DNA of 64,000 nucleotides, from assembly GCA_977016875.1 (NCBI GenBank), contig CDRNST010000213.1:310001-374000 (forward strand). The letters are read 5' to 3'. The stretch comes from Pavona decussata (taxonomy: Eukaryota). How positions within the stretch are numbered: the first letter of the stretch is position 1; each line of letters starts with the position of its first letter. Positions 36,365 through 36,844 of this stretch are shown here, piece by piece. A model generated the notes under the pieces. It did not search any database. It was not told the DNA's origin and worked only from the letters and a program-made list of their open reading frames with translations. The position numbers were made by a program, and so were the translations under genes.

Positions 36365-36844
36365 TTTATATTTTTAGAATCTCACATGACATGCGGGGAG
36401 TCCCCCATACTTTCCGAGAACTTGACGTCATACTTGACCAATCAGAATTTGGCACATTTTTTCTCGTTTCTTTTTCATAGCGTTTTACAATTAAGTACAA
36501 CTTTTAGAAGGGAATGTTGTTTTCTCTCGAGATTGTCGAAATACCTTAATTGTTCAAAGTGGCTAGTTCGAAGAAACGGTCTGCAAAGCAGAGGGAACAT
36601 AGTAATTATTCGTATTTAATCGGACTGGTACTGGTTAGCTAGAAATCAATTTCATTTTTGAGTCAGTTTTTGTTTCGTTTTCTGGTAGAATGGATATTAA
36701 AAAGTGAAAGATGTAACAAGAAACTGAAGAGGAAACCAAATGGGTGAAAGCAAAACGAAACATCGAGCTGCAAAAACCTTGAAGAAAGATGCAACAGCTA
36801 AAAAGTTTACTAATGTGCCAGATTAAAATTACGACTTCCCGGAA
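36365..36844 (-). promoter_or_regulatory. IRF-B core promoter: TATA, kappaB, GAS, CRE, CCAAT, ISRE-like sites
   Basis: TATAAA (minus strand) at 36365-36370; GGGGAGTCCCC at 36395-36405; TTCCGAGAA at 36412-36420; TGACGTCA at 36423-36430; CCAAT at 36438-36442; TTTCNNTTTC at 36467-36476 and 36673-36682; TTCCCGGAA at 36836-36844. Confidence 0.75.

Follow-up and report, generated by a model that had tools for sequence, protein, structure and literature searches.

A question in the evolution of immunity is the organisation of antiviral and inflammatory transcription at a time when interferons and Janus kinases (JAK) did not yet exist, and functional work in Nematostella has so far been unable to place STAT or the interferon regulatory factors (IRF) in a pathway (PMC8713801). 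A locus in Pavona decussata gives a concrete idea of how IRF genes were switched on at this pre-interferon stage. The analysed window comprises 64,000 nucleotides of contig CDRNST010000213.1 (assembly GCA_977016875.1, positions 310,001 to 374,000 of the forward strand), and all positions given below refer to this window unless another contig is named. On its minus strand, an IRF1/2-type gene, here termed IRF-B, is preceded 150-230 nt upstream of its ATG by a cluster of a TATA box, a kB site (NF-kB-type), a gamma-activated site (GAS), a cAMP response element (CRE) and a CCAAT box. The initial annotation had interpreted this cluster as an enhanceosome-like promoter and had deduced that control of IRF1-type genes by STAT and NF-kB predates interferons. 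Based on the comparison with orthologous loci, the interval 36335-36445 is probably the proximal promoter of IRF-B, which would integrate bZIP, STAT and NF-kB inputs and would be complemented by upstream clusters of IRF sites.

A conserved motif block upstream of IRF-B

Every motif string named in the initial annotation was present where it had been reported. The five proximal motifs span 78 bp, and the kB palindrome (GGGGAGTCCCC on the forward strand, 36395-36405) is the sole copy within the 64 kb. All five motifs occurred together in 0/1000 simulated 64-kb sequences generated by a first-order Markov model with the dinucleotide content of the window, and four of the five did so in 2/1000. Single motifs reach densities of 1.4 per kb (TATAAA), 1.7 per kb (CCAAT) and 0.56 per kb (TTCNNNGAA) in the window. 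Since the motifs had been picked after inspection of the sequence, the main weight was put on conservation.

Orthologous promoters were obtained by a protein word search with the exon-1 open reading frame (ORF) of IRF-B as query. Matches were exon-1 ORFs on genomic contigs of other species, and these contigs were fetched together with their flanks. In total, 13 promoter sequences including the window were compared, representing ten stony-coral-type sequences (the window among them) and the deep anthozoan lineages L017, L023 and L016 (Nematostella, DS469535). DNA-binding domain identities to the window are 70-97% for the stony-coral-type sequences and ~59% for Nematostella and L017; the domain of L023 groups with Nematostella, its protein P0020 being 56% identical to the query. 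The window's own IRF paralogues share 37-50% identity with the IRF-B domain, which is below the values of the fetched sequences, and the latter are therefore regarded as orthologues. Independence of the lineages was judged from synonymous divergence (dS). Measured from the window, dS amounts to 0.17 for L006 and 0.86 for L007, and exceeds 1.3 or is saturated for all others. The pairwise dS matrix distinguishes at least six independent stony-coral-type lineages.

By BLAST, alignment of the window's upstream DNA with distant orthologues of the stony-coral type was limited to a few short segments, mainly the motif block and blocks of IRF sites, and no alignment was obtained with L017 and L016. 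In the stony-coral-type alignment, which was anchored on the kB site, the order CTGATTGG, TGACGTCA or a one-base variant of it, TTCYNRGAA, 6-8 nt, GGGGACTCCCCG and then TCTAAAAATATAAA is kept in all ten sequences. The recurring kB element of this ordered block is GGGGAnTCCCCG, and the 12-mer GGGGACTCCCCG is identical in 10/10 sequences, several pairs of which have saturated synonymous divergence. Moreover, the order CRE, GAS, kB, TATA was observed in 13/13 sequences (with an additional IRF core after the GAS in L017, L023 and L016), the kB site of L016 being decayed and L017 having no clear TATA box.

The kB palindrome GGGGAnTCCCC is kept in 12/13 sequences with fixed half-sites GGGGA and TCCCC. 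Its central base is the sole variable position (stony corals C, L017 G, L023 A), and the place of the site in Nematostella is taken by the decayed string GCGGAAGCCC. Likewise, the GAS half-sites TTC and GAA are kept in 12/13 sequences, the exception being L015 with the broken site TTCTCGCAA. The GAS spacer varies at each of its three bases, position 4 staying Y and position 6 staying R across species (TTCYNRGAA). This substitution pattern of the kB site and the GAS fits sites read by symmetric protein dimers. A reading of the palindromes as RNA structure was rejected, as RNAalifold predicted only a 4-bp kB hairpin without compensatory change. The CRE is exact in 7/13 sequences and otherwise occurs as the single-base variants TGACGTAA, TGACATCA, CGACGTCA and TGACGTTA, GAC.T being invariant in 13/13.

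Further elements of the block show a narrower distribution. The TGATTGG of the NF-Y box is invariant in 10/10 stony-coral-type sequences; L017, L023 and L016 lack it. An E-box (TCATGTGA) between kB site and TATA box was found in 8/10 stony-coral-type sequences, counting the variant TCATGTAA of L015, and is missing from the orthologue alignment in L010, L011, L017, L023 and L016. An exact TATAAA is present in the window, L007, L008, L009, L012, L015, L016 and L023; the box is degenerate in L006, L010, L011 and L014, and none was found in L017. Approximately 30 nt past the TATA stretch, an initiator-like CA-TT motif occupies the same alignment position in most orthologues. Furthermore, among the 7-mers in the 500 nt of upstream sequence of the window, 28 are common to at least five of nine distant orthologues, versus a mean of 4 in shuffles, and 16 of these 28 fall within the proximal block (TGATTGG, GACGTCA, the 12-mer kB site, CATGTGA and the TATA stretch).

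Conservation of the sites had been set beforehand as the check on which the initial annotation could fail; GAS and kB site were each retained in all but one of the sequences despite saturated synonymous divergence. The cluster is far beyond chance, and a chance origin is excluded. The comparison shows an ordered and tightly packed block under strong purifying selection, consisting of candidate NF-Y, CRE, GAS, kB, E-box, TATA and initiator-like elements. Regarding the term 'enhanceosome-like', order and packing are borne out, and the rigid spacing that the term implies is not: among species, CRE and GAS are separated by 1-14 nt, GAS and kB site by 6-8 nt, and kB site and TATA box by 24-35 nt. 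In addition, the allele represented by RNA contig X2 carries the 6-bp insertion TCTCAC after 36379, which changes the distance between E-box and TATA box. A second 6-bp insertion of this allele, TCTAGA, follows 36215 beside the ATG. Single-nucleotide polymorphisms in the leader were recorded at 36240, 36257 and 36272.

The gene adjoining the block

The ATG at 36214 opens a minus-strand ORF encoding a complete IRF DNA-binding domain (Pfam PF00605, E 2e-37). In a search against sequences of solved structures in the PDB, this domain obtained its best scores with IRF2 (148-151 bits) and IRF1 (137.5 bits), followed by IRF4 (~110 bits) and IRF3 (~71 bits). No IAD (PF10401) was detected near IRF-B, matches to this domain being located on other contigs only. 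Taken together, both results make 'IRF1-type' a fair label for IRF-B, in agreement with the initial annotation. The splice joint 35827|32786, with GT..AG on the minus strand, is contained in assembled RNA contigs from three runs of two studies (X1/X2 and X5), indicating that IRF-B is expressed and spliced. Contigs of X9, the sole run recorded as RNA among the four used, were not placed on the stretch. Intron 1 comprises 3040 nt, and the exon following exon 2 ends at 30372, as the loose-end 30-mer of the contig maps to 30343-30372.

Age and specificity of the module

The deep lineages allow the composition of the block to be followed beyond stony corals. In L017, it consists of TGACATCA, TTCCAGGAA, the IRF core GAAACGAAAC and GGGGAGTCCCCG, and in L023 of TGACGTTA, TTCCAAGAA, ACGAAA, GGGGAATCCCCG, a second copy of TTCCAAGAA and TATAAATA, with GGGGAATCCCC as the intact kB site of the latter lineage. 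In both, the GAS runs into the IRF core GAAACGAAA, which is placed between GAS and kB site. The CRE-GAS-kB core is common to deeply separated anthozoan lineages, accompanied by a TATA box in all except L017, and NF-Y box and E-box are confined to the stony-coral-type sequences. It is proposed that the CRE-GAS-kB-TATA core is old within Anthozoa, that NF-Y box and E-box were gained in the stony-coral lineage, and that Nematostella lost the kB site. Between the CRE-like site and the GAS, L017 also carries an octamer-like ATGCAAAT (L017:2790-2800), and L023 and Nematostella have the IRF core ACTTTCGA at the equivalent position.

A module common to IRF paralogues was considered and rejected, as L001, L003, L004 (IRF-A) and L005 all lack the CRE-GAS-kB block. 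Judged from these upstream sequences, the module is specific to the IRF-B orthologue group and is not a property of IRF genes generally. A genome-wide regulon sharing the exact GAS-kB composite was likewise rejected: the 602-Mb genome contains two matches, namely this locus and one chance-level match, versus one for the reversed control. The kB palindrome is not enriched genome-wide either, with 107 sites (one per 5.6 Mb) versus 522 for the reversed control, which is thus five times commoner. Copies of GGGGASTCCCC recur at intervals of ~547 bp at G000:C40:1167818-1169462 and G000:C60:2002895-2003999, which indicates a tandem repeat family carrying a kB-type palindrome.

Predicted transcription start

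From the conserved TATA box, whose first T precedes it by 32 nt, a start at the A of CCCCATTC (36338) is predicted; this TATA-directed start appears rather likely and would yield a 124-nt leader. The positions of the motifs relative to this predicted +1 are compiled in Table 1, together with all further features. Upper ends of the spliced contigs are located at 36302 (X1), 36256 (X5) and 36446 (X2); they belong to assembled contigs with one mean depth each and are not measured 5' ends. The Logan contig L015 was rejected as a transcript for mapping the start, as it stops matching its genomic relatives 8 nt ahead of the splice donor, with the remainder unmapped in the neighbouring 3 kb. Beyond the IRF exon, L015:899-1704 contains a death-domain-like ORF that has no match near the IRF locus of the relatives and represents a chimeric assembly or a rearrangement.

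Table 1. Features of the IRF-B locus, with positions in the window and, for promoter elements, relative to the predicted start
Feature	Position	Strand	Relative to predicted +1	Basis or remark
Exon 2 of IRF-B (129 nt)	32658..32786	-		splice joint and contig pieces
Exon 1 of IRF-B, coding, whole DNA-binding domain	35827..36214	-		translation, PF00605, splice joint 35827|32786
Predicted 5' untranslated region, 124 nt, if the TATA box directs initiation	36215..36338	-		spliced contigs; upper end predicted
Initiator-like CCCCATTC	36335..36342	-		candidate, read from sequence
TATA box TATAAA, within conserved stretch TCTAAAAATATAAA	36370..36365	-	-32/-27	string scan and orthologue alignment
E-box / M-box-like TCATGTGA	36382..36389	-	-51/-44	orthologue alignment
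kB-type 11-bp palindrome GGGGACTCCCC with invariant 3' G	36394..36406	-	-67/-57 (kB)	two 5-bp half-sites, one central base
GAS-type site TTCTCGGAA	36412..36420	-	-82/-74	forward string TTCCGAGAA; 6 nt from kB site
Full palindromic CRE TGACGTCA	36423..36430	-	-92/-85	2 nt from GAS; 4 copies in window
NF-Y-type CCAAT box, gene strand CTGATTGGTC	36436..36445	-	-104/-100 (CCAAT)	CCAAT itself 36438-36442
ISRE-like GAAAAAGAAAC with A-rich flank, clade-specific	36457..36476	-		same string in L006 only
Distal conserved block 1, IRF-binding cores AANNGAAA on both strands	36640..36790	-		includes ISRE GAAAACGAAAC (36673-36683) and CTTTCACTTTT
Perfect GAS string TTCCCGGAA, probably not functional	36836..36844	.		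no counterpart in L006 (dS 0.17) or any other orthologue
Distal conserved block 2, GAAA-repeat (IRF/ISRE-like) cluster	37298..37421	-		BLAST L011 72% over 126 nt, E 5e-11; L007 77% over 93 nt

Candidate factors and proposed mechanism

In the proposed mechanism, NF-Y and TBP would set up a focused TATA promoter with a start near 36338. Three dimeric, signal-dependent factors would then be accommodated within ~36 bp, namely a bZIP protein of the CREB/ATF/Jun type on TGACGTCA, the sole STAT on TTCYNRGAA and, on GGGGAnTCCCC, the p50/p105-like NF-kB of cnidarians as a homodimer. Their joint binding would make transcription of IRF-B depend on coincident stress or pathogen signals, and the upstream IRF-site clusters would add auto- or cross-regulation by IRF proteins. 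For this mechanism, we infer the identities of the factors, the start position and a possible common descent with the control regions of vertebrate IRF1 or IFN-beta.

Genes for the candidate factors were searched in the genome. STAT_bind (PF02864) gave nothing at the default threshold. A STAT gene at G000:C8:3616274-3623471 (+) became apparent when thresholds were relaxed and exons were scanned one by one against Pfam; its colinear exons match STAT_alpha weakly, followed by STAT_bind, STAT_linker (E 2e-9) and SH2 (E 4e-5). Furthermore, two Rel-homology-domain loci were found at G000:C486:2974974-2977622 and G000:C313:138160-139925. STATs recognise TTCN3-4GAA (PMC3670263). Among the NF-kB proteins of early-branching animals, the sets of bound sites are very similar (PMC13042239), and the NF-kB motif of Capsaspora resembles the p50-homodimer motif (PMC8677719). 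The sole cnidarian NF-kB is p50/p105-like and binds sites that strongly resemble the ones bound by other NF-kBs (PMC13042239, PMC8677719). Canonical JAK architecture appears unique to Bilateria (PMC3670263), which makes the unknown upstream STAT activator implied by the initial annotation a fair corollary. No description of this promoter module was found in the literature; a review from 2026 on NF-kB of early-branching animals contains no mention of IRF and urges the identification of targets (PMC13042239).

The deduction that STAT and NF-kB controlled IRF1-type genes before interferons is supported in part, namely by the conserved cis block and by the presence of STAT and Rel-homology-domain genes. 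Several observations weigh against it and against the promoter reading as a whole. Knocking down STAT or individual IRFs in Nematostella did not measurably alter cGAMP-induced genes, and the antiviral genes were NF-kB independent (PMC8713801). The latter result fits the decayed kB site of the Nematostella orthologue. By analogy, the assignments of motifs to factors borrow bilaterian specificities. The GGAA(A) inside the GAS could serve ETS or NFAT proteins, GGAA being present in 9/13 sequences versus TTC..GAA in 12/13. Neither site is universal, since the GAS is broken in L015 and the kB site in Nematostella. Moreover, the spliced X2 contig (1983 nt) extends up to 36446 and thereby passes through TATA box, kB site, GAS, CRE and CCAAT box.

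Alternative explanations

Competing explanations were weighed. The conserved module may be read by other factors, i.e., ETS or NFAT proteins on the GGAAA in the 'GAS' or an unrelated palindrome-binding protein on GGGGAnTCCCC; the element would then be functional, and the logic of STAT and NF-kB control would be wrong. Besides the frequency of GGAA(A) in the GAS sites, this explanation draws on the fusion of the GAS with the IRF core GAAACGAAA in L017 and L023, on the sea anemone STAT, which lacks a transactivation domain (PMC3670263), and on the STAT knock-down without effect (PMC8713801). However, L009, L023 and L016 keep TTC..AGAA without GGAA, which means that the STAT description covers more lineages. 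In addition, a 5+1+5 palindrome with a free centre is the classical p50-homodimer-type site, in keeping with the p50/p105-like nature and the very similar site preferences of cnidarian NF-kB (PMC13042239, PMC8677719). Reading by other factors is considered unlikely.

A different objection concerns position rather than factors: the true start could be located upstream of the block, which would then belong to the 5' untranslated region or serve as an intragenic or downstream regulatory element, or there could be a second promoter further upstream. Support for this comes from the X2 contig, whose end at 36446 lies past all five motifs, and from L015, which has 524 nt upstream of the ATG. However, the X1 and X5 contigs end below the predicted start, and the same runs contain contigs of low depth (2.6-7) over introns and intergenic DNA, so that the ~100-nt extension of X2 may be background joined to an exon contig; L015 is not a clean transcript. 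The spacing from TATA box to CA-TT is kept across lineages, and neither RNA structure nor covariation was found. A location downstream of the start is accordingly regarded as quite improbable. As to a mere chance or compositional coincidence without function, the motifs are short, common and selected after viewing the sequence; it is refuted by the conservation, with GGGGACTCCCCG invariant in ten sequences and order and spacing kept, as well as by the simulations, and retains practically no probability. The reading of the block as a proximal promoter integrating bZIP, STAT and NF-kB inputs is therefore preferred.

IRF sites upstream of the block and neighbouring features

Conservation continues upstream of the proximal block in two segments of interferon-stimulated response element (ISRE) and IRF-site character (distal blocks 1 and 2, Table 1). 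BLAST matched distal block 1 to L010, L014 and L011, the last of these with 83% over 72 nt (E 1e-17). In the majority of stony-coral-type orthologues, the segment at an equal distance contains 4-7 cores per ~160 nt, compared with a window background of 2.6 per kb; counts are lower in L010 and in the truncated L015. Both distal blocks are among the densest stretches of AANNGAAA in the 64-kb window, and GAAANNGAAAC and AAAAGTGAAAG cores were also observed there. Clustered AANNGAAA / GAAANNGAAA cores, representing candidate IRF sites, were found at orthologous positions, as was looked for in an autoregulatory element. The conserved distal blocks suggest that IRF-B may be subject to auto- or cross-regulation by IRF proteins.

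The outlying sites cited in support by the initial annotation fared differently. Matches to GAAANNGAAA are located at 36467-36476 and 36673-36682, and the ISRE at 36673 belongs to conserved block 1 and is upheld. The ISRE-like site at 36467 is shared with L006 only; L007 has a merely similar GAAA-rich stretch at this position, and other lineages lack the site. The string TTCCCGGAA at 36836 is absent even from the 97%-identical L006 and lends no support.

Five IRF loci were identified in the genome. One of them, IRF-A (L004, 18919-19233), is arranged in tandem with IRF-B (35882-36196) on the minus strand, 17 kb away. The upstream region of IRF-A contains TTCCCCGAA and GAAATTGAAA, located at -294 and -42, respectively, when counted from the upstream-most in-frame ATG. 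An identical ISRE string, GAAAGCGAAA, is located at -148 of L001 (G000:C62), at -93 of L005 (G000:C3) and at -293 of the Nematostella orthologue (L016). Its occurrence upstream of several IRF genes hints at an IRF-to-IRF network.

Significance and comparison with known systems

The locus presents a short and sharply delimited set of sites that is marked as functional by several independent lineages. It also permits lineages that retain the kB site to be compared, as a natural experiment, with Nematostella, in which the site has decayed. For coral biology, it represents a candidate node joining NF-kB, which has been implicated in symbiosis and bleaching, to an IRF.

Among previous work, the Nematostella study of Lewandowska et al. 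2021 is close in phylum, in the three motif classes and in its TATA analysis of inducible immune genes. For genes induced by poly(I:C), STAT, IRF and NF-kB motifs were reported in promoters and TATA boxes were scanned, and the gene called IRF1 was found to depend on RLRb (PMC8476169). In contrast to the present locus, that study concerns statistical enrichment of vertebrate matrices across many genes, and no positionally conserved composite module at an IRF gene is described (PMC8476169).

The vertebrate IRF1 promoter, which is driven by one GAS and NF-kB sites, resembles the coral module in that a gene of the IRF1/2 subfamily is preceded by one proximal TTCN3GAA GAS and a kB site close together (PMC7819612). 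The shared logic would be a convergence of STAT and NF-kB signals on an IRF gene, which on the coral side is a prediction by analogy. A composite GAS/kB element of the IRF1 promoter is described by Pine 1997, as cited in PMC3262563. The coral module differs by its kB site, a perfect 11-bp palindrome of the p50 type, and by the presence, within one stretch of 110 bp, of a full CRE and a TATA box along with NF-Y box and E-box. The human IRF1 promoter, in contrast, is a TATA-less CpG island in which the GAS and a consensus kB site are located ~70 bp apart. Its STAT input originates from interferon/JAK signalling, which is not known from cnidarians.

With the IFN-beta enhanceosome (PRDIV-PRDIII-PRDI-PRDII), the coral module shares the order of bZIP, central STAT/IRF-type and kB sites toward the TATA box (order of the positive regulatory domains, PRD, from PMC7411613). 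The sites are packed within ~40 bp in both cases, and in L017 and L023 an IRF core (GAAACGAAA) is likewise placed in the centre, between GAS and kB site. PRDIV to PRDII of IFN-beta extend from about -102 to -55, and the positions of the coral CRE, GAS and kB site relative to the predicted start resemble these values. However, the enhanceosome has four central IRF sites, whereas the central element of stony corals is a GAS. Spacing in the coral module is not rigid, as illustrated by the natural 6-bp insertion allele between E-box and TATA box, and the target is a transcription factor gene instead of a cytokine gene. A bolder proposal, which we regard as improbable at present, is that a bZIP-STAT/IRF-NF-kB element with the order and approximate TATA distance of the IFN-beta enhanceosome and the IRF1 GAS/kB module had already been connected to an IRF1/2-like gene in the ancestor of anthozoans, and that the pathogen-coincidence logic of interferon promoters was inherited from a pre-interferon circuit. 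Should this analogy hold, a JAK-less STAT and a p50-like NF-kB would jointly have induced an IRF in that circuit, and Nematostella would represent its natural kB-loss mutant.

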